NCBI GenBank assembly: GCA_004431415.1
Contig: QPMI01000653.1
Location: forward strand, 1-31,062
Direction of reading: 5' to 3'
DNA: 31,062 nt
Origin: Cyanophora paradoxa CCMP329
Taxonomy: Eukaryota > Plantae > Glaucophyta
In this document: positions 1,785 through 28,014 of the stretch, piece by piece
Position numbering within the stretch: position 1 is the stretch's first letter
How the letters are laid out: each line of letters begins with the position of its first letter
The notes under the pieces: model-generated
What the model was told of the DNA's origin: nothing
Database searches by the model: none
What the model saw: only the letters and a program-made list of their open reading frames with translations
Translations under genes and position numbers: made by a program

Positions 1785-2230
1785 AGATGGTGCGGCCGGC
1801 CCTGCTGACAGATAGCCCGCCTGGTCGATTCCGGCTACGGCGCCTGTACCCCCGACGGGCCACGAGCTCTCTGGTGGGACGAGGCGGGCGGCGGGGGGCG
1901 GGGAGAGCGGGGTACGGACGAACGAGCCCGCCGCTTATCGCCCGCCTGGTCGATTCCGCTACGGCGCCTGACCCTGGCGGACGCGCGAGCTCTCGGTGAG
2001 ACGCGGCGAGCGGCAGAGGGTTCGGGGAAGCGGGGGGTACGGACAAACCGAGCCCCGCCGCTTATGGCCGCCTGGTCGATTCCGGCTACGGCGCCTGTAC
2101 CCCTGGGCGGCCCGCGAGCACGTCGTGAGGCGAGGCGAGCGGCCAGAGGGTGCGGGGGAGCGGGGGTACGGACGGACCAGGCCGCCGCTTATGGCCCGCT
2201 GGTCGATTCCGGCTACGGCGCCTGTACCCT
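1785..2230 (-). repeat. Tandem array, type A units (~125 bp), 4 cores, reverse orientation
   Basis: GCCTGGTCGATTCCGGCTACGGCGCCTGTACCCC (some with 1-bp deletions) at ~1819, 1944, 2070 and 2198. Reverse complement of the units at 5017-6776 and 26899-27283. Confidence 0.95.
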
Positions 2231-2332
2231 GGCGGGTGCGCGAGCTCTTTGAGAGACGGGGGCGAGCGGTCGGAGGGTGCGGAAGCGCGCGAAGGGGTGG
2301 GTCGAGAGGAAAGGCAAACGACAGCGTTAGCA

Positions 2333-3490
2333 GGGGTACACGCACCGTAGCCGGAATCGACCAGGCCGCCCCTACTGCGAGCCAGCTGCTGCGATCCGTA
2401 CGGGCGCCGAGTGAGCGAGGGCGGGGGGGCGGGGGGGGCGCGTTGGAGGGTACACGCACCGTAGCCGGAATCGACCAGGCCGCCCTACTGCGAGCCAGCT
2501 GCGGCGGGCCGTGCGGGCCGCGAGTGAGCGAGGGCGGGGGCGCTCGAAGGGGGCGAGAGGCCTAAGGGGTACACACACGTAGCCGGAATCGACCAGGCCG
2601 CCCTACTGCGAGCCTGCTGCCGCGGGCCGTACGGGTCGTCGAGCGAGCGAGGGCGGAGGCGCACAAGGGGGGGCGAGGGCTAAGGGTACACACACCGTAG
2701 CCGGAATCGACCAGGCCGCCCCTGCTGCGAGCCAGCTGCGGCGGGCCGTGCGGGCCGCGAGTGAGCGAGGGCGGGGGCGCTCGAAGGGGGCGAGAGGCCT
2801 AAGGGTACACACACCGTAGCCGGAATCGACCAGGCCGCCCTACTGCGAGCCTGCTGCCGCGGGCCGTACGGGTCGTCGAGTGAGCAAGGGCGAGGCGCAC
2901 AAGGGGGGGCGAGGGGCCTAAGGGGTACACACACCGTAGCCGGAATCGACCAGGCCGCCCCTACTGCGAGCCAGCTGCGGCGGGCCGTACGGCCGCCGAG
3001 TGAGCGAGGGCGGGGGCGCTCGAAGGGGGCGAGAGGCCTAGGGGTACACACACCGTAGCCGGAATCGACCAGGCCGCCCTACTGCGAGCCTGCTGCCGCG
3101 GGCCGTACGGGCCGCCGAGTGAGCGAGGGCGGGGCGCTCGAGGGGGGGCGAGGGGGCCTAAGGGTACACACCGTAGGCGGAATCGACCAGGCCGCCCTAC
3201 TGCGAGCCAGCTGCGGCGGGCCGTACGGGCCGCCGAGTGAGCGAGGGCGGGGGGCGCTCGAAGGGGGCGAGAGGCCTAAGGGTACACACACCGTAGGCGG
3301 AATCGACCAGGCGCCTCTACTGCGAGCCAGCTGCCGCGGGCCGTGCGGGCCGCCGAATAAGCGAGGGGCGGGGCGCTCAAAGGGCGAGAGGCCTAAGGGG
3401 TACACACACCGTAGCCGGAATCGACCAGGCGGGCCCCTACTGCGGGCCAGCTGCCGCGGGCCGTGCGGGCCGCCGAAGGAGCAACGAGGG
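2333..3490 (+). repeat. Tandem array, type B units (~118 bp), 10 cores
   Basis: GGGGTACACACACCGTAGCCGGAATCGACCAGGC-CGCCCCTACTGCGAGCC at ~2333, 2448, 2566, 2684, 2803, 2922, 3040, 3161, 3280 and 3397. Confidence 0.95.
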
Positions 3491-5016
3491 CGGGGCGCGC
3501 GAGGGGCCGCGGAGCGGGCAGCGGGCGAGGAAAGGGGGCGGGGCTCGCTGCAGCCCGAAGAAGCGGACCGAGCGCGGTGCCGGCCGACTCGGTGATCGTC
3601 TTGCTCGCCGGACCGGTGCGCCCGCACTCCTCCCCGCGTAGCGCTTCGCGAGGGTGTGGCGGAGAAGCGCGCGGGTCCGCACGCTGCGCGCCGGCGCCGC
3701 ACGCGGCGGCCGCGGACCGATCGATATCGACGGCCGGAGGCGCGCAGGCGGAAAAGCGCGGAAAGTGCGCCTTGGGCTCCGGCTGCGTCTGCGCTACCGC
3801 CGAGCGCGGCGCCGTGCGCGCGAGCTCGGGTGCCAGCATGTGCGAATAGGGCACGCATACGTGAGCTTGTGGGCCGGAGAGGCATCGGAGGGCGCTGCGG
3901 ATCGATCGCTAGCCATGGCCATGGGATCTTCGACTCAGTGACTGCGCCGACCCGAGCACGAGCCGGGCGGGCGCCGACGCGATTTTCGAGCTCAACAGGA
4001 GCCAAGGACTGCGCCAGAGGGCACTCGCGCGACGCGGCGTGCTGTTGAAATTCGATGGTGCGATGTCGCACGATCGAAACGTTGCAAACTGGCCCCCCCC
4101 CCCCCGAAAGAGCTGCGCTTTGGGCCAGCGTGCGTGCACGCGCTCGCCGAGCTGCGGCGGCAGCTGCGGCACGCGGTGCGCGTGCTCGAGCCTCCAGGCT
4201 CCAGCCGCACGGCTGCGGCGAGTCTCTGGTACACGCATTTCACCGCCGGGCGGAAAAGCACGCTAGAGCCACAGCGATCCACGCACAGAGAGCAGCGGAC
4301 CCGAGCCGCGCTCGTGCGGGCGCTCGGACGCGCCCGAGCCGCGAGCCTCCTTCTGCTCTCCGAGAGATCTAGAGCCACGCCTCCGGCGGTTCCAGCTACC
4401 GTGCGGTTCATGCGCTCCCGTCGGTCGTAGCCTGCTCGGCGGCCGCGGCCCGCAGGCAACTTTCGATCCGCCGCGGCTGACGTGCGCATGCCTCTGTACA
4501 TGTCCCTCGCCCGGCCGCAGGGCGCCGACGCCGGATTAAGTTTTTGCGCGCCGCGAGCTCTTCCTGCGTTCAGTTCGAATCAAAGCGGCTCATGCCTACG
4601 CGCGCCGCGCGCCCGGCCGGGCCCGCCCGCCGGAGCCGGCCGGCGCTCAACCGGCCAGGCCTCGGCGCCGGGCGCGGCGCCCCGTCGCCCAGAGCGGATC
4701 GCCTGGTGCGCTTCGGGGCCGCCTGCTCGGGGGGCGGGACGCGCGGCAGCGGCCTGGCGAGGCCGGGCGCGGGACGTCGGTCGGCACGGGGAGCCGGCCG
4801 ATGCCCTGCGGCGGCGGCGGCGCAAGCGGCGGCGGGGCGTCCATCGCGAGGTTGAGCGCGGCCCGCCGGGCGCCGCGCCCGTGGCGGGCGAGAGAGGCCC
4901 CGCTTCGAGCGTCCCTCTGGATCCGCTTCCCCGCCAACGCCAAGCCCTCCGCAGCCGGCCCGCCGGGCGAGCCAAGAGCGCCCGGGGCCTCGTGTGGGGG
5001 TGCGCCCGAGCACGGC

Positions 5017-6776
5017 GGGCCTGGTCCGTCCGTACCCCCGCTCTCCCCGCCCCCGCCGCTCGCCGCGTCTCACCGAGGGCTCGCGGGCCCGCCCAGGGGT
5101 ACAGGCGCCGTAGCGGAATCGACCAGGTGGGCCATAGGCGCGGGGGCTGGTCCGTCCGTACCCCTCGCTTCCCCCGCACCCTCTGGCCGCTCGCCGCGTC
5201 TCACCGAGAGCTCGCGCGTCCGCCCAGGGGTACAGGCGCCGTAGCCGGAATCGACCAGGTGGGCCATAGGCGGCGGGGGCCTGGTCCGTCCGTACCCCCC
5301 GCTTCCCCCGCACCCTCTGGCCGCTCGCCGCGTCTCACCGAGAGCTCGCGCGTCCGCCCAGGGGTACAGGCGCCGTAGCCGGAATCGACCAGGCGGGCCA
5401 TAATCGGCGGACCCGGTCCGTCCGTGCCCTCTGCTCGCCCGCCCCCGCCGCTCGCCTCGTCCACCGACGTGCTCGCGGGCCACCCAGGGGTACAGGCGCC
5501 GTAGCCGGAATCGACCAGGCGGGCGATAAGCGGCGGCCCGGTCCGTCCGTACCCCGCTCCCCTGCACCCTCTGGCCGCTCGCCTCGTCTCACCGAGGGCT
5601 CGTGGGCCCGTCCAGGGTACAGGCGCCGTAGCCGGAATCGACCAGGCGGGCCATAACGGCGGGCCCGGTCCGTCCGTACCCCCGCTCGCCCCCACCCCCG
5701 CCGCTCGCCTCGTCTCACCGGCGTGCTTGCGGGCCGCCCAGGGGTACAGGCGCCGTAGCCGGAATCGACCAGGCGGGCCATAACCGGCGGGGCCGGTCCG
5801 TCCGTACCCTGCACCCTCTGGCCGCTCGCCTCGTCTCACCGAGAGCTCGCGAGCCCGCCCAGGGGTACAGGCGCCGTAGCCGGAATCGACCAGGCGGGCC
5901 ATAAGCGGCGGGCCTGGTCCGTCCGTACCCCCCGCTCTCCCCGCCCCCGCCGCTCGCCGCGTCTCACCGAGGGCTCGCGGGCCCGCCAGGGGTACAGGCC
6001 GCCGTAGCCGGAATCGACCAGGCGGGCGATAAGCGACGGGCCTGGTCCGTCCGTACCCCCCCGCTTCCCCCGCACCCTCTGCCGCTCGCCGCGTCTCACC
6101 AAGAGCCTCGCACCGCCCAGGGGTACAGGCGCCGTAGCCGGAATCGACCAGGCGGGCGATAAGCGGCGGGCCCGGTCCGTCCGTACCCCCGCTTCCCTGC
6201 ACCCTCTGGCCGCTCGCCTCGTCTCATCGAGAGCCGCGGTCCGCCCAGGGGTACAGGCGCCGTAGCGGAATCGACCAGGCGGGCGTTAAGCGGCGGGCCC
6301 GGTCCGTCCGTACCCCCGCTCCCTGCACCCTCTGGCGCTCGCCTCGTCTCACCGAGGGCTCGTGGGCCCGTCCAGGGGTACAGGCGCCGTAGCCGGAATC
6401 GACCAGGCGGGCCATAACCGGCGGGGCCCGGTCCGTCCGTACCCCGCTCGCCCCCACCCCCGCCGCTCGCCTCGTCTCACCGGCGTGCTTGCGGGCCTGC
6501 CCAGGGGTACAGGCGCCGTAGCCGGAATCGACCAGGCGGGCCATAACTGGCGGGCCCGGCGTCCGTACCCTGCACCTCTGGCGCTCGCCTCGTCTCACCG
6601 AGAGCTCGCGAGCCCGCCAGGGGTACAGGCGCCGTAGCCGGAATCGACCAGGCGGGCCATAAGCGGCGGGCCGGTCCGTCCGTACCCCCGCTTCTCCCCC
6701 GTCCCCGCCGCTCGCCTCGTCTCACCGAGAGCTCGCGGCCCCGCCCAGGGTACAGGCGCCGTAGCCGGAATCGACC
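5017..6776 (+). repeat. Tandem array, type A units (~127 bp), 14 cores
   Basis: GGGGTACAGGCGCCGTAGCCGGAATCGACCAGG at ~5096, 5227, 5361, 5487, 5615, 5741, 5862, 5989, 6120, 6247, 6375, 6504, 6620 and 6748. The inter-core sequences are homologous to each other. Confidence 0.97.
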
Positions 6777-7068: not shown

Positions 7069-9403
7069 ATGGCGTCGCAGCCGGCGTCGGGGGCCAGGTG
7101 ACGAGCCCGCGGGGCGCGGCGGGCGGCGCGTCCGGCTGCCCGCCCCTCGACTCGCGGCCGGCCAAGGTCAGCCTCCCCGCGTTCATCAGCCTGGGGCGGG
7201 ACCCGCTCTCTCCTGCCGCCCGCCTGCGCCGCTGCAAGTCGGAGCGCATCCTCCCCCGATCCTCCTCTCCTGCGCCGCCGCCCGCCTCCTCGCCAAGACC
7301 GGCGCATCGTCCGTCAACGAGGCCCTGGACGCCCACCCGCGCCCCGCCCTCGACGACCTCAAGTTCAACTCGACCGGCTCGTTCGTCTGCCTCAGCTGCG
7401 CCCTCACCCTCCTCTCCGTCAGCGCCGAGGGCGGCGCCTCGCCGCCCCTCTTCACCTGCCCCAGCTGCGGCGACCCCCACCCGGCCGCCTCGGGCCTCGT
7501 CTGCAGCTCCCGCATCGACGCCCTCTTTTCCTTTCTCGCCTACATCGACGACGCCGCCTTTGCCGCCTCGTGGATCTCCGGCGACCTCTGCCTCCGCACG
7601 GCGCTCACGTACGCCCTCGAGCGCTTCCAGGCGGCCGCCGCCCAGGCCCGCGCCCGCCGCCGCGCCGCGGCGGCCCGCCCCGGCCCCCGCGGCCCCCGCC
7701 GGGGCGGGCCGAGCTCGGGCTCCGGCTCTGGCCCCGAGCCGCCGCCCGTCCGACGGATCCGCGCCGCCGCCCAGCCGCCGGCGCCGGCGGCCGCCCCCTG
7801 GCCCGGGGAGCCGGCCGCGGGCGCCAAGGCCCAGGCGGCAAGAAGCGCAAGGAAAGGGCGCCGCCTTGGGCCGGGCCGGCCGCCGAGGAGGAGGGGGAGG
7901 AGAAGGAGGAGGAGGGGCCGGCCACCGGCCCTCGCGATCGCGCGCCAAGCGCGCCGCGACGTCGACCAAGGGCCGGCGCGGGGCGAGTCGGCGGCCGAGC
8001 AGGAAGAGGGGAGGACGGCGCCGAGGAGCGGGCGCTGGAGCGGCGCAAGACGCTGCGCCCGCCCAAGCCGGCGAGCTCCCCCGACCCGAGGCGGCGTCGG
8101 CGTCGGCCTCGGCGCAGGGCGCCGGCCCGGGTCCGGCTCGGGCGCCGGCCCTCGAAGCCGGCGCGGCGGGCGGCGCGGAGCAAGTGGGGCGCCGGGCGCG
8201 ACGCCGCAAGGAGTGGGAGTCGGACAAGCTCATCCGCGTCCTCTACAACGCGTACACGCGCCCAAGGACGAGGACGCGCGCTCCGAGTCGGAGGGGGGCA
8301 GCTCGCCGGGAGCGGCGGCGGCGGCGGCGGCAGCAGCGGCGGCGGCGGCAAGGGCAAGGCAAGGGCAAGCGGCGGCGGCCCCCTCGCCATCGAGGCCGGG
8401 CCCGAGGGCGGCGGGGCGGCGGCGGCGGCTCGGGCAGCGAGGAGGACGGCTCGCGCGCCGGCTCGCCGGACCCGCGGGGCAAGGAGCTCGCGGAGCGCTG
8501 GCGCAAGGCCCTCGCCGAGGCGGAGCGGGCGAGGGCGGCGCGGACGACGCCGACGAGCTCGCCGAGGGCCCGCCGGGGCGGGGGCGAGGGCGAGGGCGGC
8601 TCGACCCAGAGTCGCTGGAGGCCTACGACTTTGGGCTCGAGCGGGATCGACCCGGGGCTCATCGGGCGCCAGATCGACGCCAGCCCCGAGGCCGCGCGGC
8701 CCTCCTGAACCGCATCGAAGAGGCGGGGCGGGAGCGGATCCGCTGCATCATGCTCATCGCCTGCTCCGTCCTCGCCGTCCACCAGGCCTACACGGAGCGC
8801 TACGGCCGCAACCGCCGCCTCTGGGGCGCCTACCGCGCCGAGCACCTCTGCGCAAAGTACGACCACATCCTCCAGGCGGCCGGCTTTCGCCTCGAGGTCA
8901 GCGCCCAAAAGGTGAGTCGCTTCGAATTCCCCTGCGGGAGGAGGGGCGGGGGCGGGCCCCTAGCGCTAGCTGCAAGCACGCGTGCCCGGCCCGGCGTGCT
9001 TTCAACGTCGCTCACCGGAGGCTCGCGCAGTCCGAGATCTACAACGACCTCGCGCGCTGGGAGAGACGCTCACGAGGTTCCCTGGCCTGGCGCGCGTCTG
9101 CGGGAGCGGCATATCGGTCGTCGACTTTGTCAGCTGCCTCCCGCTCCTGAAGGGCTGCACGAAAGAGGGGGCGGACCAGATCCGGAGCGGCTCGCGGAAG
9201 AGGTGCAGCGCGCCAAGGGCTTTGTCTTTGACGGCTCGGTGCTGGAGCTTCGGGAGGCCGGCGAGAGCGACGGGACGGGGACGGGGACGAGCAGAGCGAG
9301 GCGTCGGGCGAGGAAGGGCCGCCGAAGGCGCCGGCGAGGCCGGCGCCAAAGGCGACTGACCGGCAACGAAAATAGCACACGTTATACGCTGTTTAGAGTT
9401 TAG
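7069..9403 (+). CDS. Hypothetical protein with CxxC...CxxC zinc ribbon, low-complexity linker and helical C-terminal domain (frameshifted, at least one intron near 8912)
   Basis: High-GC3 frame not shown in the ORF track reads ILLSCAAARLLAKTG...FVCLSCALTLL...LFTCPSCGDPHP...FSFLAYIDD...ALERF (~7259-7640). It continues with EWESDKLIRVLYNAYT and LLNRIEEAGRERIRCIMLIACSVLAVHQAYTERYG...SAQK|gtgag. The 3' end (9359 or 9403) is uncertain. Confidence 0.55.
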
Positions 9404-9794
9404 CCTTTTCGTTTCAATCATCTAAATAATCTGGCCCTCTCTCTTTCTGGCTCTTTAGTAAGATCTAGATCTAGAGTGAAGCCTATAGCTAGGCCCTAGT
9501 TGACTATTTGATGCGATGTTCCCCGCGCTCTAGACTTGTAGATTTCTGATCTGTGCAGTACGTAGTGTGCTTTTATGATCCGTGTGACTTTCTGCGCTCA
9601 GTGCTCACGTGTTATCATAGTATCGATATCGATTGCAAGCTTAAGCACCCGATTCTGCCATGCCGTGACGAGGCCTAGGGCGGCTCATGATCACTGACTT
9701 GCAATTGGTAAATAAGTGACCGTGATCATGACCAGAACTCGTGGTGGCGGCATTCTAGCTATTTGTCTCAGAGTCTCTATCGCGATTTTAAGCT

Positions 9795-10876
9795 TCAGGC
9801 GCTCTCGGTGTCGGCCGCCGTGTCTCCCTTCAAGCGTCGCGCAAGATCCGTGTCTGCAGGGCTGTCCAAATTCAAGGATCAGGACAGTCGCGATTAGCAT
9901 CAATCCGAGCGTGACATTATAATTAAAGAAGCAGCCTGGCAGAGGGAGCTTAAGCCATGCTTATAATTATAGTTATAATCAAGGGACGGAAGAGGCACTG
10001 CAGCATTTGTAATCAAAAATAGGGCAAGACCTTACGCGTGCGCACCCGACCGTGACTCGCTTGCGGTGCTTGGCCGCGAGGACACCACCCTCGAACCAGC
10101 GAATGATGTGCGCCTCGGCGGCCTCGCGAATGGCTTGGATAGTGTCCTGCAAGACATGAAATACTAATCAGCCAGCTATTCGCACCCCCCCGCGCCCGGC
10201 ACTGCGGCACGGGCGCGCACCTTTGTGAACCGAAAGTTAACAGATTGTTCACGAAGACCGGCCTCCACGTCTTCCTTGATCATCGCGGCCGTGAGCTCGC
10301 GCACCTGCGCACGTGCACGCGCCGCACAGCAGGGCACAGGGCTCGGGCGGCAGAGGATAGTTTCAAGTTTTGAAGGGCCCCCACACGTACCAGGCGGCCG
10401 AACGGGGCCAGCGGAATGAGGGCATTGTAGGTCTTCTGGTACCTGAACAGGAGCGGGGTTTCATTCAGAATTTATTTGTCACAGATCTAAATAGATTTAA
10501 ACAAGAGTGAAATAAAAAACATTGAACGTACTTCACAATTTCGCGCTTTGCCACCGTCCCAGGGCGATGGCTGCGCGAGCGAGCGATTCTCACGTGCCGG
10601 GACTTTCTCTTCAAAATAAAACGTAGGGAAGAGAGCAGGCCGACCGGAACGGCTTTCTCACTCCGCCCTCGCCCACAGCCTTTTTCCGCGCGGCTTTGGT
10701 CTTGAGGCCGCTGGCGCCGGAGCTCTTGAATGCCTTTCGCGGGCCTTGTTTCCGGTGCCACGCTTGGCAGTTTGCTGCAAAATATAATTACAATGAACGA
10801 ACTCGAAAGAACTAAGAATCGCAGATATGAATTCAGCGGGCTTTCATGATCATTTTCCCACCTTGATGCGGGGCAT
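9795..10876 (-). CDS. Divergent histone H3 variant (7 exons, ~162 aa; H3/CenH3-like histone fold)
   Basis: Exons 10876-10862, 10774-10645 (one C missing in GCCC), 10570-10532, 10442-10391, 10304-10221, 10146-10046, 9861-9795; all six introns GT-AG. Translation: MPRIKQTAKRGTGNKA(P)RKAFKSSGASGLKTKAARKKAVGEGGVRKPFRHRPGTVAKREIVKYQKTYNALIPLAPFGRLVRELTAAMIKEDVEAGLREQSVNFRFTKDTIQAIREAAEAHIIRWFEGGVLAAKHRKRVTVGPADTDLARRLKGDTAADTESA*. Collinear with canonical H3 from K4 to G132. Confidence 0.93.
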
Positions 10877-11205
10877 TGTTATATATGAGTAGACCGCGGG
10901 GGTCAAAAGCCACTGGGCCACCGGGGGCACTAATCAAAGCGAACGACATGCTTATCTGCTCGACCGCCAGCTGCAGCCGCTGGGCTGCAGGTCCGACCGT
11001 CCAATTCAGGCACGTGATTATAATTATATTCTGCCCGACGCCGGCGCAGCCGCGAGCACGCCGCGCAGCTCGCTCTGAGCGTGCAGGACGCACTGCATCA
11101 TGATCAAGCTCAAGCGACAGCGGAAAGCGGCCCCGGGCGTATTCGAAACCTTCCCGACCCGAGGCCAGGAGCCCGGCGCCGGCGTTCACGCCCGCAGACG
11201 ATGCG

Positions 11206-11980
11206 TTCTATTAGCTCGGAATGCATCAGAAGAACGCTTGAACGATCCCCGGCAGCCGCCTCTGCGCTCGCGCCGCGCCAGGGCGCAGGGCCCCGCCCCC
11301 GGGGCTCGGGCCCCCCGACCAGAGCTCCGGCAGAGACGAAGCGCTCTATTAGCTCGGGCTTCACTGCAGATGCGAATTCGTGCCTTCTCGGCCCGCGGGG
11401 CGGGGCTCAGGCGCGCCAGGTCCGACGGAAAAGCCCCGGCCGGGGGTCGGCCGAAACCCGGGGTACCGGGACCGCGGGGAACTAACGATGTAAATCGCTT
11501 CCTAGCGCACCGAGAATGCGTTTTAGTCACTCTGTTCCATGCCGAGCCCGCCGGCCGCGATGCCAGAGGCCCCATTGAAAGGTGCCACCAGAACTGGACC
11601 CCCCCCAAAGGAGGCTATTCCGGGGGCCCCTGAACGGAACCAAGGCCGTTTAAGGCATCTCCGAGGCCCAGAGGCTCAGGAAAAAATACCAGTTCCATAC
11701 CCGGAGCGGATCCTAGGGTCTCGGGGGGAGGCCCCCCCGGGACCCCCCCGCCCCCAACTCGCCAGGAGAGGCCCGGGGAATGGAACCGGCGCTCTATTTC
11801 AACACTACGAGACCCGCAGACGCTAAATACGCGCTCCCCGCGGCGCCGGGGCGCGCCGGCGGCGCCGGCCGGGGGCGGATCAAATCTGCGCCCCGAGGCC
11901 CCCCGGAGGCTCCGAGAGGGCCGGCCGAGGCCGGGGCGAGGGGCGGAGCCGGCCATATATAGGGGCCCGAGCTAATAGAA
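11206..11980. promoter_or_regulatory. Divergent promoter region with three copies of TCTATTAGCTCGG and a TATA-like CATATATAGG
   Basis: TTCTATTAGCTCGG at 11206-11219, TCTATTAGCTCGGG at 11345-11358, inverted copy CCCGAGCTAATAGAA at 11966-11980. CATATATAGG at 11954-11963, ~80 bp before ATG 12035. Confidence 0.6.
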
Positions 11981-12034: not shown

Positions 12035-14763
12035 ATGTTCAGCGTGGTCAAGGACGCCTACGAGGTCGCCGAGTTCGACGGCCTGTGGGGCCGGGACCGC
12101 CTGATCCTGCTGCGCTCCGACGCCGGCCTCGTCGTGCCCGTCGCCGAGCTGCGCCGCATCCTCATCTACGCCCCCGATGAGCCGCCGGAGGACCCCGACC
12201 GGGCGCTGGCGGACCTGTACCGCGTCCCCTGCAGGCCCGTCGCGAGCGAGGAGACGATCCTGCTGCTCGAGATGCTCGGCGTGATCCGCCGCGGGGCGCA
12301 CCGGCCCGACGGGAGCCCGCCGCGCGTCGTCTCCCTCCGCCACGCCGAGCAGATCGTGTGCGAGCGGTGGGACGAGGACCCCGGGGTGAGCGCGAGGAAG
12401 CGGTGCGTCGCCCGCCACATCCTCGCCGCGATCGAGCGCCGCCGGCTCGAGTCGTTCGAGCGCGTCGAGCTCCGCGTCCTCCGCCTCGGGCCCTCCAGCG
12501 CCACCCGCGTCTTTGCCCTCCGCTGCAAGCGCATCGAGGTCCCCGTGAGCGGCGCCCCCGACCAAGCACCGCCCCGGCGCCCCGCCCCGCCCCGCGCCCC
12601 ACGCTCACCCGGCCTCAGGACGTCGAGTGGTACGCGCCCATCGCGTCCCTCGCGCAGGCGGCGTACGGCTCCTCGCGGACGTGCCCTCGCTGCGGGCCGA
12701 GATCAGGCGCAAGCACCCCGACCTCGGGGCCGACTCGCCTTTTCGCTTCGAGGCACGGACCGACGTCGTCGGGCGGGCCCGCTTCGCCCTCCTCACCAAG
12801 GCGCGCGCCCGCCTCCCGCCTCCGAGCGCGCCCGGGCGCCGGCTGATCGATATTGTGACCGCCCGCGGCCGGGGGTCAGACGCTGACGCTGTACGCCGGG
12901 CTGAACGCCGAGGTCGAGGGCGAGGCGACGCGCGGGCGGCGCGCAAGTGGGGCTTCATCAGCCTCGCCGGCGCCGAGAGGATCCTCCAGGGCCTGCCGCG
13001 CTTCGGGACGAGCTCCTCGTGCCGTTCCGCCGCCAGCGCCTCGCCCTCGAGGGCGCCGACGCCGCCGAGATCGAGGCCGCCGCGCCGCTGCCCCTCGCCC
13101 CCGCCCGCCGCATCGCCATCTTTACGAAGCGCGAGTGGCTCACGGTAAGCAGAGGGACGCGCGGGGCCGGGGCGCGGGGATCGAGGCGGAGGGGCCGGGG
13201 GGCGCTGACCGCGGGCGGCGGCGGCAGGACCAGCACATCGCCAACTGCCTCTCGATCGTGCTGGCGCGGGCCAGCGCGGCGCCCCGCGTCCGAGCCCTGT
13301 ACCCCATGACGCTCGACATTGCGACGAGCCTCCTCCGCCGCCACGCGCGCGCCAGCCCCGAGAAGCGCCGGCGCCGCGCCCTGGGGGCGGCGGAAGAGGG
13401 GCGCGTCATCCTCTGCCCCGTCTCGGGCGGGCTCGTGCGGCGCGGGTCGGAGCGAACCTGGAGCGCGGGGGGCCACTGGACGCTCCTCGTGATCTCCGGC
13501 GACCTGCGCCGCACCCGCTACTTTGACAGCCTGGGCGCGCGCCCGGACCCGTCGCTGGAGCGGGCGGCGAAAAAGGCCTTTCCGAACTTTGAGTTCGAGG
13601 TCGAGACGCAGCTGCGGCTGCAGGCCGATGGGTACCAGTGCGGCATCTGTGCGCGCGCCGCCGCCGCTCAGCGAGTGGTACCGGTACGGTGCAAGGGGAA
13701 GGGACGCCGACGCACCCGTGCGCGCGCAGGGTCCTCTACTTTGCGGAGAGCGTGGTGAGCGAGGCGCTCCTCGGCTTTCCCTGGGACGACGAGCTGCGCA
13801 CCGGCGCCCTCCACTACCTGCGCACCAAGTCGCCCTCGTACGAGGAGAGAAAGGCGATCAACGGGCGCTTCATCGCGGGAAAGAGGGAGCACTTTCGGAG
13901 CCTGCTCGAGTCGGCGCTCGTCGGCGACGTCTACCTCTTCTGCGAGGCCGACGTCGCCGATCCGGAGCGCGTGACGCTCCCGCCGCCGGCCGCCGCGGGC
14001 GAGGCCGCCGCCGCCGCCGCCGCCGCCGCCGAGGGGAGGCCCCGCCGGCGGGCGGACGGGGGGCCGCTGGTCATCTCCTCGTCCTCTTCCTCGTCGTCCT
14101 CGTCGTCCGCCCCGTCCGACGAGGCCGACGAGGCCCAAGGCGGGGCCGCGGACGGCGGCGCCGACGGCGAGGCAGAGGGCCTGGAGCTGGAGGCGGCGCC
14201 GGAGGCGAGCGAGGGCGAGGGCGAGGGCGAGGGGGCCGCAGAGGGCGGGCGGTCGCGCCCGGAGCCGTACGCGCTGCCGGAGGGCGAGTGGAGCCGCGAG
14301 CTGCGGGCGCAGATGAAGCTCTTCGAGGAGTGGAGGACGAGGGCGATCAACCCGGACCGCGCGGGGGCGGCCGTCGAGCGGAGCACGGCCCTGACGAACG
14401 ACGTCGGTGAGCGGGCGCGGCGGCGGCGGCGGAGATGCATATGGGCGGGGCGGGGGACGGAGGAAAGGGGGCTCACGGGGAATCGACGCAGGGACGGTGG
14501 GGCGCTTCCTGGGGTACCTGGCGGCGAGGGAGGAGGTCAGACCGCTCTCGTTCGACGTCTTCTCGCGGGGGGACCTGATCGACCTGTGGATGCGGTTCCT
14601 GACGTTTCTCAAGGAGGAGAGGAAGCTCACCGCGGGGACGCTGAGCGGCTACACCAGCTCGATCATCATGGCCGCCGCCTTTGTGCACTCGAGGACGGGC
14701 GCCGCGACGGGGAGCGAGGGCCCGCACGCCCGCGCCCTGAAGAACGTCAAGGTCAGAGGCGCT

Positions 14764-14795
<32 letters not shown>

Positions 14796-15768
14796 AGAGG
14801 GATCTAGAGAGAGGAGGAGAGGGGCGGAAGAGGGTCGGGGCGGGGGCTACGAACCCGACGCCCGCCCGCCCGCAGGCGCAGCTGGAAAAGGAGAAGCGGG
14901 AGGAGCGCAAGTGGCGGCCGCGGGGCGAGAACTGGGTCGAGTACGAGCAGGTCCTGGGCGCCCGGCTCGCCGCCCTCGAGCAGTACGAGGGCGCGAAGAC
15001 GGACTACGAGCGGGCCCAGGCCCTCCGCGAGGCCTGCCTCCTCGGCTTCCTCGCCGTCACGCCGGCCCGCGTCGGGATCATCCGCCGCCTGCGCGTGGGG
15101 GTGAGCCTGCGGCGCGACGCGGGGGCGTGGTGCATCGTCATCGACTCGATGCGGGCGGACGACGGGACGGGGGAGATGGCCCTCGCGAGCAAGACGGCCC
15201 GCTTCCACGGGGCCCTCTCGATCCCCGTCGCCGCCGTCCTGCAGGAGCCGCTCACCCTCTTCGTGGAGCGCTTCCGCCGCCTCCTCATCCCCGACGGCGC
15301 CCCCGACCAGCAGTGGCTCTTCACCAGCTCGAGCGGCGGCGTCCTCAGCGAGAGCGGCTACGGCGCCTGGGTCAAGCGGGCGCGTCGGAGGGGGTGGCGG
15401 GGGCGGGGCCGGGGCTCACCGCCGCGCCGGCAGGTGCTGGAGCGGTGGACGGGCAAGCCGGTCTCTGCACGCGCCATGAGGGCCGTCCTGACGACCTACG
15501 TGCGGGAGCGGGCGGCGGCGCACCAGATCGAGGGGGACACGGCGGCGGCGGTGATCGAGGGGACGGCCCGCCTCCTGCAGCACAGCGTCCAGACGGCGAC
15601 GACGCACTACGACTACGGCGCCCGCGCCCGCCAGGCCGCCGCCGCCGTCGCGTTCTTCGAGATGGCCGCCCAGCAGCACGCCGCCCGCCGCGCGGCCGAG
15701 GGCGCCGACCGCGAGCGCCTCCCGGCCCCGTCCCCGCCGCCCGCGGCCGCCGGCTCCTCTGCGGCTCC

Positions 15769-15800
<32 letters not shown>

Positions 15801-17056
15801 CGGGGGCGCCGACGGGCCGGACGAGGGGGTACCGGTGGCGCAGCCCGCCGCCGAGCCCGAGCCCGAGCCCCGCGCCGGCGCCCCGTCTCCCCCCTCCTCC
15901 TCGTCGTCCACCGCGACGCCGCCGCGCCGCGCAGCGCGGAGGACGGCGCCCCCGAAGCCTGCGGAAGAGGATGAGGAGAGCGACGGCGGGAGCGGGCGGG
16001 GCCGCTCGGGAGGCGCGAGCTCGTACTCGGAAGACGGCGAGGATTCCACGGGGAGCGGGGCCTCGAGCGGCGGCGAAGAGGGGCCGGAGCAGAAGCGGAG
16101 GCGCTTCCCGTGGCAGAAGCAGAACCCGTTCACGAGGCCCGGGATGCAGGTCGAGCGCGACCTCGCGATCGCCGAGGGGAGGTACTGCGCCCCGTGCGTC
16201 AAGGTGAGGCCCCGCCCGCCGTCCGCCCCGCCCCGCCCCCGCCCGCCCCCTCTCCCGCGGACCGACCCGGCAGCGCCCGCGCGAGCAGATCTTCCGCACC
16301 GCGGCGGGGTACCAGCGCCACCGGGCGACGTCCAAGGCGCACGGCCGAGGGGCCGGGGCGGGGCGGGGCGGCCGCCGGCGGGGGTCCAGGGGCCGCGCCG
16401 CGCGGCGCGGGCGGGACGGGGACGGGGAGGAAGAAGAGGAGGAGGAGGGGGAGGAGCAGGTCGGCGGCGAGCCCCCCGCGGCCCGCGGGCCGCTCTGGCA
16501 CCTGCGCTGGACGTCGGCGTCGCCCTTTCGGGCGGGCCAGGTCGTGGCGGCGCTCACCTCGCACGCGGCGGATCCCCTGCCGCGCCCCGTCTTTGCCCGC
16601 CTCGTCGCGACGGTGCCGCTCCCCTCGGGCGAGACGGAGAACCGCTTCGTCGTGCTCCGGCGCTTCGGGGCCCTGTACGCGCCGTCGACCGAGGGCGGGC
16701 CCGGCGACTGGGGGCGGCCCCGCGCGCTCGTACCGGTGCAGAGCGAGTCGAGGAACGGCGCCGTCGACGTGCTGACGAAAAGCGAGCGGATCTTCGACCT
16801 CCTCGGCCTGGGCTCCTCCTCGTCGGCGCCGCCGCCGCCGGCGCCGCCGCCGGCCCGCGGGCCCGGCCCCGCGACGAGGAGCGCGAGCGCGGGCCCCCGC
16901 GGCGCGGCCGCCCGCCGAAGCGCGGGGCCCGCTCCGCGTAGCCCCCTGCGGCCGCCCTCGAGCCGCCCCCGCCTCCCACCAGCTGCAGAGATCGAGCGCG
17001 CGCGGGCTGGGCGCGGCCCGGGAGCTGAAGAGGTCGGCCGAACTGCGCGTGCGTAA
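12035..17056 (+). CDS. Multi-exon fusion protein: putative tandem Bro-N/SKI-like DNA-binding domains + Ulp1/SENP-like cysteine protease (C48) + tyrosine recombinase + C2H2 zinc finger + C-terminal domain
   Basis: Protease: EWLT|DQHI...GHWTLLV (His 13474)...YFDSLG (Asp 13525)...QADGYQCGI(W)|VLYFAE (Gln 13621, Cys 13639). Recombinase: RFLGYL...FLKEERKLTAGTLSGY, TPARVG (Arg 15068), SKTARFHG (Lys 15191), ARAMR (Arg 15479), LLQHS (His 15581), THYDY (Tyr 15608). Finger: YCAPCVK|IFRTAAGYQRHRATSKAH (~16183-16342). In-frame introns at 14407-14491, 14752-14875, 15380-15433 (GC-AG) and 16204-16288. A few 1-bp frameshifts are needed. Confidence 0.85.
14773..14799 (+). repeat. (GA)n microsatellite inside a recombinase-gene intron
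   Basis: gagagaga... run within intron 14752-14875. Confidence 0.9.
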
Positions 17057-17145
17057 AAAGAGGCCGGCGGGAGGAGACGCGGGGCGGCAAGCTAGCTGCA
17101 GCGCGCGCGGGCGCCGGGGCGCGAGCGCGTGCGACGCCGGCTTCG

Positions 17146-17556
17146 ATGGGGGACGCACCGGGGCCGCCGACGACGACTCCAGCGACGACGCAGTCGATCC
17201 TGGAGCGCGCAGGCTCGCAGCATGCCGTGTACCTGCTCCAGAGCGAAAAGGCGGGCGCCGGCGTGACCTACACCGGCTCCACCAGCTGCCTGGCGCGCCG
17301 GCTCAAGGAGCACCAAACGGGGGCGATCAAGGGCGCGTACACGGCCGGAAGGGGCCCCTGGCGACTCGTGGCTGCGGCGTGGGGCTTTGCAGACGCCGCC
17401 GGCGCGCGTTCGTTCGAGATGCGCGTCAAGAAGCGCTCCGGCGGCGCGAAGCGCAAGCTCCACGCCATGCGCGACATGGCGCATGAGGGTGCGAGCGCGG
17501 GCCTGGCGTTTGGGCTCGCCGAGGGCCTCGTGGGCGGCTGCGGCGAGGTCGGGTGA
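17146..17556 (+). CDS. SLX1-like GIY-YIG endonuclease (136 aa, intronless)
   Basis: AVYLLQS...TYTGST..LARRLKEH...GAYT.GRGPWRLV....GF.....ARSFE matches the GIY-YIG SLX1/UPF0213 motif series, including the conserved Arg, His and Glu. Starts 90 bp after the recombinase stop. Confidence 0.88.
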   Translation: MGDAPGPPTTTPATTQSILERAGSQHAVYLLQSEKAGAGVTYTGSTSCLARRLKEHQTGAIKGAYTAGRGPWRLVAAAWGFADAAGARSFEMRVKKRSGGAKRKLHAMRDMAHEGASAGLAFGLAEGLVGGCGEVG

Positions 17557-20761: not shown

Positions 20762-20766
20762 CCCCC

Positions 20767-20816
<50 letters not shown>
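20762..20816 (+). repeat. Poly-C tract (~50 nt)
   Basis: Directly visible. A shorter poly-C tract lies at ~26389-26418. Both sit just upstream of GGGATTCCC-type promoters. Confidence 0.9.
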
Positions 20817-20821
<5 letters not shown>

Positions 20822-21083
20822 CTCCAACGACGAACGAAGCGCCTTCAGGACCCCCCGAGACGTTACGGGGTAGATGCAGGCGCGGGGTGGAGGGGGTGGG
20901 AGGGGGGGAGGGGGGAAGAATGCCAAGGGATTCCCGGGCGGCGTCGGGAATCCCGGGTCGAGCCGTCGAGACCGCGGGGTCGATAAAAGGGGTTGCGCGG
21001 TGCCATCTCACAACACGAGCGTGCACTATCGCCCGAGAAAAGGCCGCCCACCCCCACCAATTCTCGTACCGCTAGAGATACCG

Positions 21084-22067
21084 ATGGCCACGGAGACGAC
21101 GCACATGGCGGCGGCGGCGGCGGCGCCCCTTTCCGAGCCGGCGGCGCCCAGGTTGATCGCCGACCTCCCCGACGAGATCGTTCGCATGGTAACGAAGCGG
21201 CTCGGGCCCTGGGATGCCAAGCGCACCCTGGGGTCTACGAACCGCCGCTTTCGCGACTTGGTCAAAAACGACGACGGCGAGTGGGCGGCCTTGTGCAAGA
21301 CGCAGCTCGGGATCGTGGTTCCCGAAGACGCTCCGCGGGACGGCCTACAACGTCTACGCCGGCTTTTTCGCGACGCGCTGCCGCTTGTGCTTTGAGCGCG
21401 GCTTCTGGAAGCCCAGCGAGGAGCCGATGGTGATGGACCCGCTCTTGAACATGCGCCTCTGCTCCACCGACGCCCGCTGCGATCGTACCCCGATGAGCAG
21501 CATCTACACCATTTCTTATGAATCGAAGAACAGCCACGACAATTACGGGCTATACGGAAACACCATCCCGCACCTAGTCGTCGACGCGGCCGGTCGAACG
21601 AATTACGCCGCCCTCGTCAGGGAGCGGAGCGCCGCCGCGGCCTCCCCGCCCGCCCAGGCCTCCTCTCCATGGCGGAGATCGTCAAGCGCTACCACCTCGT
21701 CCCCGCCGCAATACGAAGCACCGTCCGCGCGGGGCCCTCGCCGCGGCCGGCTACGACCCGGAGACGCTGGAGGAGCGCTTCGACCCCGCCGCCGTCCGTG
21801 CCTGGCTGGTCGATGAGGCCGGCGCCGGCATCCCCGATCCAGAGGGGCGCGCACGAAATCTCGAGAAGGCGGCAGAGTACCGCAAGCGCCGCCGCGGACA
21901 GTTCGAGCAGCACACTGCGCCGGCTGCGCATATGCATGCCACCGCTCCGGCTGCGCATGCCACCGCGCCGGCTGCGCCTGCCGCGGGGCGGCCGGGGTGG
22001 CGTCATGATCAGCTATATGAACTATATATACGACGTCGATCTGGGAGAATTCGTTACCGCTCCTTGA
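21084..22067 (+). CDS. F-box protein with CxxC...C zinc-binding region, paralog 1 (intronless, frameshifted; 3' end uncertain)
   Basis: IADLPDEIVRMVTKRLGPWDAKRTLGSTNRRFRDLV...W..LC is an F-box signature. Followed by RCRLCF...DPLLNMRLC...C and NYGLYGNTIPHLVVDAAG, shared with paralog 2. Confidence 0.75.
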
Positions 22068-22627: not shown

Positions 22628-23634
22628 ATGACCCTGACGACGATGCCGACCCGTGCACTTGAGCTCGAGCCCGAATTTGTGGAGGCGGTGGCGCATGGAG
22701 GCCGCCCGGGCGCGTCGCCGGCGCCCGTGGCCGAGGCCGAGGCCGACATAAATCGCGAGATCGAGCTCACGATCGTGCCTGCCGCGCCAAAGTCGACGTC
22801 GGTGTCGTTTCTAGACCTCCCCGACGAGATCATCGCGAAAAGATCGCCACCATGCTGGGCGCCAAGGGCGCCAACATGTACCTGGGATCCCTCTGCCGCC
22901 ACTTCCGCACCATCGTCAAGGAGCACGACCAGGCGTGGGCGCAGCTGTGCACGACGGAATTCGAGCTGGGCGTCACCAACATGGAGAGGGCCCCGCGCGG
23001 GGGGCCCCACGCCGCGTACTTTGCGTTTGCCGCCGTGCGCTGCAAGGCGTGCTTCTACGGCCACCGCGACTGGAGCCCCGCGGCCGACACGCCGTTTATC
23101 GACCCGATCACAAAGTGGCCCGTCTGCGCCGACTGCGCCGCTCCCTACACGAGCACCGCGAACGGCGTGGCCATTGGTCACGTGATCAGCGCCATCTCTG
23201 GCGAGTCCCGCGAGGCCAGCGTCAAGTACGGCCTCTACGGAACCACCATCCCGCACCTCGCCGTCGACGCGGCCGCTTTACGAACTATGCCGCCATCGTC
23301 AGGGAGCGGGAGCGCCGCCGCGGCCTCCCGCCCGCCCGGCCTCCTCTCCATGGCGGAATCGTCAAGCGCTACCGCCTCGTCCCCGGTCGCTGTCTGCATC
23401 ACCGCCCGCGCGGGCCTCCCCGTGGCCGGCTACGACCCGGAGACGCTGGGGAGCGCTTCGACCCGCGACGTCCGTGGCTGGCTGGTTGAGAAGGCCGAAA
23501 TCCCCGATCCGGAGAGGCGTGTGCGCGATCTCGAGAAAAAGGCCGAGCGGCGCAAGCGCAAGCGACAGCAGGAGCCCGACGCCGAGCGCTCCGCCGCGCC
23601 GGGCGCGTCCGTAGAGGCCCACGCCGAGATCTAG
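22628..23634 (+). CDS. F-box protein with CxxC...CxxC zinc finger, paralog 2 (intronless, frameshifted)
   Basis: FLDLPDEIIAK(fs)IATMLG...LGSLCRHFRTIV...WAQLC is an F-box signature. Followed by RCKACF...DPITKWPVCADC, KYGLYGTTIPHLAVDAA, GYDPETL and IPDPE, shared with paralog 1. Confidence 0.78.
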
Positions 23635-26559: not shown

Positions 26560-26812
26560 GGGGTACCCCCTCGCGCACCCCCGGCCTCGCTCACCGGCGG
26601 CGAGCACCCCGTACGGCTCGCTGCATCTGGCTCGCAGTAGGGGCGGCCTGGTCGATTCCGGCTACGGCGTGTGTACCCCTCAATCGCGCCCTCTCCGATT
26701 CTCGTACGCCCCTCGCGCTCGCCCTCGCTCGCCCTGCGGCCCGTTCGGTTCGCCGCAGCTGGTGCGCAGTAGGGGCGGCCTGGTCGATTCCGGCTACGGC
26801 GTGTGTACCCCT
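26560..26812 (-). repeat. Type B units, reverse orientation, 2 cores
   Basis: CGCAGTAGGGGCG-GCCTGGTCGATTCCGGCTACGGCGTGTGTACCCC, with cores at 26646-26679 and 26778-26811. Confidence 0.93.
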
Positions 26813-26898
26813 GCTAACGCTGCCCTTTTCCCTCCCTCTCCAACTACCCCTGGCCCTCCCGGGTCCCGCATCCTCTCAGCGAGGACCCGCAGGACGTC

Positions 26899-27283
26899 GG
26901 GGGTACAGGCGCCGTAGCCGGAATCGACCAGGCGGGCGATAAGCGGCGGGGCTCGGTTCGGTCGTACCCCCGCTCCCCCCGCCCCCCGCCGCGCCCTCGC
27001 CTCGTCTCACCGCGCGCGAGCTCGCGGGTCCGCCCAGGGGTACAGGCGCCGTAGCCGGAATCGACCAGGCGGGCCATAAGCGGCGGGGCTCGGTTCGGTC
27101 GTACCCCCTGCTCCCCCCGCCCCCCGCTGCGCCCTCGCCCCGTCTCACCGCGAGCCCGCGCGTCCGCCCAGGGGTACAGGCGCCGTAGCCGGAATCGACC
27201 AGGCGGGCCATAAGCGGCGGGGCTCGGTTCGGCCGTACCCCCGCCCCCCCCCGACCCCGCCCGCTCGCCCCGTCTCACCGAGG
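26899..27283 (+). repeat. Type A units, 3 cores (~135 bp period)
   Basis: GGGGTACAGGCGCCGTAGCCGGAATCGACCAGGCGGG at ~26899, 27037 and 27171. Confidence 0.95.
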
Positions 27284-27335: not shown

Positions 27336-28014
27336 TCACTGATCGTGAGCGGCCGCGGGGGCGGGCCGGGGGCGGGGGCCCGAGTGCAGCTCGGGGGGAA
27401 CGAGCCACGCGGCCGAGCGGTAGCGATCGCGAAACGCCTGCGGCGCCCAGGCGGGGAGCGCCGCCGCCCCCTCGTCGAGGCGCCGCCCGTAGCCCTGCGG
27501 GTCCGCCCGCCACCGCGCCGCGTGCTCGCCGGCGAGAAAAGTGATGCCGGCGCCCGGGGCGGCGCGGCAGAGGGGGCAGCGAAAGTCGGCGGGGGGCAGC
27601 GAGGCGAGGCAGTGGAGGCAGAAGACGTGGTTGCAGGCGAGGCGGACGGGCCGCGCGTGCGGCTCCAGGCAGACCGCGCACGGGTCCCTCTCGTCGGCGC
27701 CGGCCGCGCCGGCCGCGGCCGGCAGCTCGGCGCTCGACGCGTTCCGCATGCACCAGCAGGTGAGGGCGGCGAGGTGGCCGAGGGAGACGAAGCGGGCGAG
27801 GGCGGCGGGGTCCGTGCGCGGGTCGCCCCCCGCCGGCGCCTCGACGACCTCGGTCTCGACCCAGGACTTGCCGCGCGCCACGGGCAGAGGCACGCGGATG
27901 GAGCCGCGCGCCGCGTCGTACTCGTGCAGACCGTGCCCGCTCCGCGCGCGAGCGGGTCCCGCTCCCCGCCGAAGCGCTGGGGTACGGGGTGGCCCGGTGC
28001 CCGCGGGCGCTCAT
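27336..28014 (-). CDS. RING-HC (C3HC4) finger protein, putative E3 ubiquitin ligase
   Basis: CAVCLEPHARPVRLACNHVFCLHCLASLPPADFRCPLCR is a canonical C3HC4 RING. Likely ATG at 28014 (needs one frameshift), below a minus-strand ATAAAA at 28120-28115. Confidence 0.85.

Follow-up and report, generated by a model that had tools for sequence, protein, structure and literature searches.

An unannotated seven-exon gene encoding an unusual relative of histone H3 in the glaucophyte Cyanophora paradoxa

Residues 87-90 of histone H3 form a chaperone-recognition patch that reads AAIG in H3.3, and variants of the H3.3 type depart from bulk H3 at only a handful of positions. Centromeric variants (cenH3, also termed CENP-A or CENH3) are recognised by an extended loop 1, the absence of the alpha-1 glutamine, loss of a threonine and a divergent fold (PMC7052976, PMC4359364), and algal candidates have usually been picked out as isolated, intron-bearing H3 genes (PMC11092101). 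H3-like proteins are also encoded by some giant viruses that replicate in the nucleus, those of clandestinovirus and medusavirus combining an elongated loop 1 with lysines conserved in the tail (PMC9145170). Cryptons are the closest described systems for the gene adjoining the locus reported here. Described members carry a recombinase gene plus at most a peptidase and typically lack terminal repeats, the pairing of Ulp1 with a tyrosine recombinase being a known layout (PMC3212892); in Chlamydomonas, insertions of an active Crypton favour the vicinity of 5' UTRs and gene-proximal DNA (PMC9977147).

The stretch of DNA analysed here (the window) comprises 31,062 nucleotides of contig QPMI01000653.1 of Cyanophora paradoxa CCMP329, the genome of which is intron-rich and has a G+C content of 67.6% (PMC6704402). 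A divergent H3 gene was detected on the minus strand at positions 10876-9795, head-to-head with a gene encoding Ulp1-like and tyrosine-recombinase-like domains.

Gene structure and relationship to histone H3

The H3-like gene consists of seven exons that are colinear with H3 from a MARTK-like start to the C-terminus, all on the minus strand; no annotation of this gene was found. Exon 1 (10862..10876) contains the start codon and four further codons, reading MPRIK against MARTK in H3, with a GT donor immediately following, and its junction with exon 2 is in phase 0 and yields K/QTA as in H3. Exon 2 (10645..10774) encodes an H3-like tail that corresponds to residues 5-40 and is lengthened by a net 8 aa after K18; it contains a −1 frameshift and was identical to H3 at 7/11 positions over residues 5-15 and at 13/20 past the insertion. 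The alpha-N region (HRPGTVAKREIVK) lies in exon 3 (10532..10570), where 9/12 positions matched H3 residues 41-52. Exon 4 (10391..10442; 9/17 identical) covers alpha-1 and carries glycine in place of Q68 and P/L in place of R63/K64, while exon 5 (10221..10304) holds the end of alpha-1 and a loop 1 that is 12 residues longer than that of H3, with R83 and F84 kept. Exon 6 (10046..10146; 14/33 identical) encodes alpha-2, loop 2 and the beginning of alpha-3, with T107G and C110A changes accompanied by retention of H113, K115, R116 and T118. Exon 7 (9795..9861; 8/15 identical) contributes the remainder of alpha-3 and the C-terminus, retains D123, L126, R128 and R129, and adds a 6-aa acidic extension before the TGA at 9797-9795.

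Each of the six introns (74-184 nt) had GT..AG boundaries, with every acceptor ending in CAG. Their presence ruled out a retrogene origin. The exons exhibited a coding-type base pattern (GC3 of 0.74, GC1 of 0.63 and GC2 of 0.50), and the introns had G+C contents of 33-65%.

Histone comparisons and searches were run exon by exon with a canonical H3 (P0006:1-136) as the reference, a mode in which searches are insensitive. Exon 6 alone matched the Pfam Histone profile (PF00125; E=2.3e-5, 25.0 bits), this single 33-aa exon falling below the whole-protein cut-off of 26.4 bits, and matched H3 residues 89-119 in PDB entries with an E value of about 1e-3. Exon 2b matched H3 tail peptides spanning residues 18-38. 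When the canonical H3 was used as a tblastn query against the window, exons 2b, 3 and 4 were detected as colinear matches (sum E=1.3e-7) and exon 6 was matched at E=1e-4; no second H3-like fold was detected elsewhere in the window. A chance resemblance to H3 was ruled out by the Pfam, PDB, tail-peptide and colinear tblastn matches together with the coding-type base pattern. The histone-fold profile match and the colinear matches through the tail, alpha-N, alpha-1, alpha-2 and alpha-3 both place the gene in the H3 family; the reading frame as assembled is interrupted by the −1 frameshift. The sequence-only reading of this DNA had proposed a hidden seven-exon H3 variant at this site, and the minus-strand exons, the GT-AG introns and the ordered H3 matches were all found. 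An unannotated seven-exon gene for an unusual relative of histone H3 is, therefore, confirmed.

A HMMER search of 1.84 billion cluster representatives with exon 6 returned artificial multi-H3 fusions only and no close relative, a 33-aa query of this kind passing only relatives of more than roughly 60-65% identity. No paralogue or other copy of the H3-like gene was found in this search, although paralogues of the recombinase gene and of the gene on the other side (gene X) are annotated. A degenerate DNA pattern derived from exon 6 had no match in viral contigs or metagenome contigs.

Residue pattern and the cenH3 question

Exon-by-exon alignment demonstrated that K4, K14, K18, K23, K27 and F84 are retained and that the substitutions are T3I, R8K, K9R, S10G, S28K, K36R, Q68G and T107G. 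Every retained residue and substitution listed in the sequence-only reading was thus present, as were its two insertions: in the tail, nine residues stand in the place of Q19, giving the net gain of 8 aa, and in loop 1, the gain of 12 aa follows from the 28 residues of exon 5, for which H3 has 16. Beyond that list, the alignment revealed an A1P change and the acidic C-terminal extension. The predicted tail would keep the H3 register while being unable to bear methylation at K9 or K36 or phosphorylation at S10 or S28.

Identity to H3 was 25/38 (66%) over tail residues 1-39, 9/12 in alpha-N and 36/79 (46%) over residues 54-135, the tail being better conserved than the fold. The remodelled parts are alpha-1, loop 1 with its additional residues, alpha-2, residues 87-90 and the C-terminus. 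At residues 87-90 the H3-like protein has DTIQ and the canonical H3 used as the reference has SAVM. The arginines that contact DNA (R40, R42, R49, R69, R72, R83, R116, R128 and R129) were all retained, as were other nucleosome residues, namely K115, T118, L126 and the H113-D123 pair of the four-helix bundle, and the RF dipeptide was present within NFRFTK in exon 5. Retention of these structural residues at only 46% identity in the fold points to purifying selection on this gene in the past. The pattern of remodelling resembles, in our analysis, the manner in which cenH3 and other specialised replacement H3s depart from bulk H3.

Several features of the fold are those of cenH3. Loop 1 has 12 extra residues, where at least one is looked for; the alpha-1 glutamine is absent (Q68G); and the fold, including alpha-1 and alpha-2, has diverged to 46% identity. 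T107 was lost and T118 (in numbering without the Met) was kept, and the outcome for the threonine depends on the numbering meant, the position being printed as 118 in PMC4359364. The C-terminus is altered, and the gene is isolated, intron-bearing and outside any histone cluster. Other features differ from those of cenH3. The tail aligns with H3 throughout, with one insertion, and has diverged less than the fold, whereas the rule for cenH3 is the converse; F84, which is absent from cenH3 by the usual criterion, was kept; the 12-aa insertion in loop 1 is a long one; and the C-terminal extension is acidic rather than hydrophobic. The suggestion of a CenH3-like protein made in the sequence-only reading consequently held for the fold (loop 1, Q68, T107 and the 46% identity) but not for F84 or the alignable tail, and the caveats attached to it were borne out, the retained F84 and a tail alignable at 66% identity being the reverse of the usual pattern.

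With replication-independent H3 variants the gene shares a solitary, intron-bearing organisation and an H3-like tail bearing K4, K14, K18, K23 and K27. It is set apart from the H3.3 type, in which near-identity to bulk H3 is expected, by the tail and loop-1 insertions, by DTIQ in the 87-90 patch and by the 46% identity in the fold. As the fold has the characters of cenH3 and F84 and the tail do not, the gene is classified here as an H3-family variant and a candidate cenH3, rather than as an established cenH3.

Exon-2 frameshift, composition and neighbouring genes

The frameshift in exon 2 was located at a CCC run on the minus strand (10741..10743; GGG on the plus strand), where the frame slips back by a single base after ...NKA and resumes at PRK.... 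The exon reads QTAKRGTGNKA and then, one base back, PRKAFK..., with the C at 10742 common to both frames; when it is read straight through, a stop is encountered after about 43 codons. No intron could bridge the frameshift. Bridging by a GC-AG intron or by a different acceptor was considered and set aside, the sole alternative that restored the frame being a weak acceptor (AAG/G) at 10734 that deletes residues 5-18. If the frameshift is genuine, this copy would be either dead or dependent on that acceptor. The frameshift noted in the sequence-only reading is thus present in the sequence, its origin being a separate matter.

Two more G-runs in the window, near 12683 and at the acceptor at 13728-13731, were one G short relative to the paralogues P0010 and P0011, which read through these sites as GSSRDVPSL and QCGIWVLYF, respectively. 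The three defects of the window belong to one type, a single-base loss in a plus-strand G-run; as the CCC run is GGG on that strand, the frameshift of the histone gene is the same kind of event as the other two. P0011, which is encoded by the sister contig tig00021535, was found to be a mosaic of the three reading frames of the window DNA at about 100% identity, with many 1-nt indels and almost no substitutions, a combination indicating that natural decay was not the cause. The assembly was produced from PacBio RSII reads with Canu and Quiver, followed by majority-rule correction with short reads (PMC6704402). The two further shortfalls and the indel-rich sister contig suggested that the frameshift may be a PacBio artefact, and we consider a long-read homopolymer error to be its somewhat likelier origin. 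The short-read correction of the assembly counts against an artefact. The shortfall at 13728-13731 has affected annotation, being the reason that the annotated model P0009 skips, and so lacks, the catalytic cysteine.

The H3-like gene and its flanks coincide exactly with a low-G+C island (9360..11100) in which G+C is 44-63%, between stretches of 68-80%. A second low-G+C island at 21-26 kb holds F-box genes and is similar in composition to the histone gene. The recombinase gene has a GC3 of 0.88-0.99 and predicted introns with 71-89% GC, compared to 0.74 and 33-65% for the H3-like gene.

Possible promoter elements were detected around the histone gene. The octamer CATATATA is located 4 nt before the proposed histone ATG and is also found ahead of gene X and the recombinase gene, in those two cases at distances like those of a TATA box; its position only 4 nt from the ATG renders the 5' end of the histone model slightly insecure. 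The palindrome TATAATTATA (11019..11028), a candidate TATA element 143 nt upstream of the histone ATG, appears to be the better promoter candidate. Related copies of TATAATTATA are present in introns 1 and 6, and 5/6 of the matches in the window fall within 9918-11028, with 0 expected by chance. Upstream of the histone gene, on the minus strand (11207..11357), are two sense-oriented copies of a 15-nt motif, GCCCGAGCTAATAGA, and a third, also in sense orientation, is found at 11967-11979, immediately past the CATATATA box that belongs to the transposon gene. This motif may act as a shared regulatory element or be bound by a protein; its presence upstream of both genes is a hint of co-regulation and fits with an association between the histone gene and the element. 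Neither TGTAA nor AATAAA polyadenylation motifs were found 3' of the histone stop codon, and an Rfam search gave no matches.

The divergently transcribed neighbour, tig00021536_g22234, occupies positions 12035..17556 of the plus strand in about 11 exons and encodes Ulp1-like, tyrosine-recombinase-like and GIY-YIG domains. Exact look-up clustered its GIY-YIG ORF (17146-17553) with EukProt entry EP00741_Cyanophora_paradoxa_P023023, tig00021536_g22234.t1 (P0009, 1543 aa). P0009 mapped exon by exon onto 12035-17556 at 98-100% identity and agreed with an independent GT-AG model. The C-terminal GIY-YIG nuclease domain was detected by Pfam with an E value of 1e-8. The Ulp1/C48-like domain contains H, D and Q..C motifs and gave weak matches to ChlaDub2 and XopD, Pfam and PDB support being at the level of motifs (E about 0.2-0.4). 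The tyrosine-recombinase-like assignment derives from an R..K..RxxR..H..Y pattern read by eye and from the multi-copy behaviour of the family; no Pfam or PDB profile supported this domain, and it was not found in viral contigs or metagenome contigs. One paralogue, P0010 (tig00020509_g9764), was 98-99% identical in clean exons, another, P0011 (tig00021535_g22231), is cut by the contig end, and P0012 and P0013 represent two remoter recombinase families of 41-43% identity. The near-identical paralogues on other contigs indicate that the neighbour is, as judged from its sequence, a Crypton-like transposon gene. It resembles Cryptons with a C48/Ulp1 peptidase (CryptonF-2_PS, CryptonS and, in Chlamydomonas, CryptonF-1_cRei) in combining a recombinase with an Ulp1-like peptidase, in being multi-copy and in that no terminal repeats were found, and differs from them in the additional GIY-YIG domain. 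The head-to-head arrangement with an Ulp1-recombinase gene, as described in the sequence-only reading, was therefore observed, the two genes diverging across 1.16 kb.

The histone gene is bordered on its opposite flank by gene X (about 7100-9356, plus strand), which likewise has several copies (P0014, P0015 and P0016). The order of gene X followed by the recombinase gene recurs on tig00021535 (g22229 and g22231), a contig that may be the same locus assembled twice. On tig00020509, the sole independent copy with readable gene numbers, the X-like gene (g9741) and the recombinase-like gene (g9764) are 23 gene numbers apart. The whole 20-kb block is flanked by arrays of one satellite family, the core of which was not matched in viral contigs. 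Neither terminal or inverted repeats framing the histone gene or the gene pair nor shared ends of an element were found, and exact look-up returned no record of contigs encoding P0008-P0011 or the two ORFs flanking the histone gene.

Origin of the gene and its significance

The explanation that we prefer, at about even probability, is that the locus is a host-encoded H3 variant, possibly a cenH3, lying beside a Crypton-like transposon, with a frameshift that is perhaps an assembly error. The product would be a replication-independent variant deposited by a chaperone of its own into a specialised chromatin domain, for which the centromere would be the leading candidate. The transposon would have landed next to a resident histone gene, the histone not being cargo-like; an insertion preference near the 5' ends of genes, as in the Chlamydomonas Crypton, would yield exactly this head-to-head layout. 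A less probable but serious competitor is that the frameshift is real and that the locus is an H3-variant pseudogene, in a repeat-rich and possibly duplicated segment, from which no full histone is made. The −1 shift with its early stop is expected of such a decaying copy, the exon-6 search yielded no annotated gene model, and short-read correction should have mended errors in a stretch that is only moderately G+C-rich. The two 1-nt losses private to the neighbouring transposon copy relative to its paralogues would fit decay of the whole locus equally well, but every defect in the window is a one-base loss from a plus-strand G-run, and the indel-to-substitution ratio of the sister contig is explained by assembly error only. 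Moreover, the other exons are all open, the twelve splice sites are canonical and the critical structural residues are intact, so that any inactivation must have been very recent.

That the histone instead moves with the Crypton-like element, or with a composite of gene X, histone and recombinase, and, as an H3 look-alike closed to methylation at K9 and K36, marks or protects the chromatin of the element was considered improbable. The divergent arrangement across 1.16 kb, the sense-oriented copies of GCCCGAGCTAATAGA upstream of both genes, the multi-copy nature of both flanking genes with their recurring order on tig00021535, the position of the block between satellite arrays of one family and the changes at all of K9, S10, S28 and K36 are consistent with transport of this kind. 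Genes that travel together should look alike, however, and the codon and intron composition of the histone gene is unlike that of the recombinase gene; the gap of 23 gene numbers on tig00020509 indicates that the flanking genes are not one obligate unit, and the tig00021535 arrangement loses its weight if that contig is the same locus assembled twice. No H3-like relative accompanied the annotated paralogues of the recombinase gene and gene X in the exon-6 search, and no terminal repeats were found to enclose the histone-recombinase pair. We know of no histone gene in any described Crypton, and the limit of a recombinase plus at most a peptidase (PMC3212892) also counts against cargo. Still less probable is a functional passenger sharing a promoter motif with the Crypton-like or composite element, which, without the K9, S10, S28 and K36 sites, would protect the chromatin of the element from becoming heterochromatin or seed chromatin of a centromere-like kind. 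The idea put forward in the sequence-only reading, an element-encoded anti-silencing or decoy histone, was unsupported in view of the contrast in composition, the lack of another copy or annotated relative in the searches and the separation of gene X and the recombinase gene on tig00020509; such a histone is improbable, with nothing in its favour beyond adjacency and the shared motif. Capture from a giant virus, followed by residence in the host genome, is the least probable of these origins. The viral H3-like proteins have the longer loop 1 and the tail lysines and are about 43-46% identical to host H3 in the fold (PMC9145170), and the gene sits in a compositional island; but ordinary F-box genes are found in another island with this composition, and the gene, unlike its viral counterparts, lies in a cellular genome and is split by six spliceosomal introns, the splice sites of which are of the host type. 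These introns, the failure of the exon-6 pattern to match viral contigs and the absence of viral genes nearby make a viral origin unlikely.

A practical lesson of this locus is that single-base homopolymer shortfalls on the contig distort gene models. Glaucophytes make up one of the three lineages with primary plastids, and hardly any work has, to our knowledge, been done on their chromatin. If the gene encodes the Cyanophora cenH3, centromeres could be mapped with its help in a genome that still consists of 712 contigs, and it would be an unusual cenH3, since its tail has remained H3-like. If it is another specialised H3, the loss of K9, S10, S28 and K36 with retention of K4, K14, K18, K23 and K27 would be a natural experiment in the function of the H3 tail.

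Domain make-up and apparent defects of the recombinase gene

The protein encoded by the Crypton-like recombinase gene (12035-17556, + strand), which combines Ulp1 and tyrosine recombinase domains, was found to have a GIY-YIG nuclease domain at its C terminus (16020-17556, + strand). No description of this three-domain combination was found for Cryptons in the publications consulted. In the annotated product of this gene, P0009 (tig00021536_g22234), the residues QADGYQ run straight into VLYF and, because of this direct junction, the Ulp1 catalytic cysteine is missing. Two paralogues annotated on other C. paradoxa contigs, P0010 and P0011, both read QCGIWVLYF at the site where P0009 is without this cysteine. 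Relative to these paralogues, the window is short of a single G at two sites, the acceptor (13728-13731) and a position near 12683. These shortfalls indicate either that this transposon copy is damaged or that the contig contains homopolymer errors.

Comparison of positions 12035-15355 with P0011 (tig00021535_g22231) detected ~100% identity, but the P0011 sequence switches among the three reading frames of the window DNA in a mosaic fashion, with all three represented; the sister contig, tig00021535, is therefore full of 1-nt indels. P0011 breaks off mid-domain where its contig ends. The sister contig may represent the same locus as the window, assembled twice.

Satellite arrays and other genes

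Arrays of 118-, 127- and 134-nt satellites with a G+C content of 75 to 83% are present at 1817-3476, 5013-6776 and 26608-27280, and the three satellites have a common core, CCGTAGCCGGAATCGACCAGG. The block at 1817-3476 is inverted with respect to that at 5013-6776. The latter and the array at 26608-27280 flank a 20-kb gene-bearing block. Gene X, located beside the histone gene on the side opposite the recombinase gene (7100-9356, + strand), contains an FTCPSCG motif, and no Pfam domain was found within it. This gene is multicopy in Cyanophora, with P0014, P0015 and P0016 being 95 to 100% identical across the 144 residues searched; as annotated, P0016 includes a translated stretch of one satellite array.

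The second island of lower G+C content contains a tandem pair of paralogous genes (20874-21816 and 22628-23634, + strand) with a common cysteine-rich C-terminal region, the first of which encodes an F-box (Pfam E = 1.5e-4). An uninterrupted C homopolymer of ~55 residues is located at 20762-20816. A C3HC4-type RING-finger open reading frame (27339-28010, - strand; Pfam E = 6e-7) has a very high GC3 of 0.92.

Motifs in and upstream of the genes

The palindrome TATAATTATA and its near-copies are concentrated in the histone locus (9918-11028), which has five of the six matches in the window, with occurrences in the promoter as well as in introns 1 and 6. A 15-nt motif, GCCCGAGCTAATAGA, occurs three times (11207-11219, 11345-11357 and 11967-11979), with two copies facing the histone gene and one facing the recombinase gene, immediately past the CATATATA box of the latter. 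This octamer was detected four times in the window (6980, 10880, 11954 and 25342) compared to 0.06 occurrences expected by chance. Gene X, the histone gene and the recombinase gene are each preceded at short distance by one of these copies in the sense orientation, accounting for three of the four, and CATATATA is probably the local TATA-box consensus.
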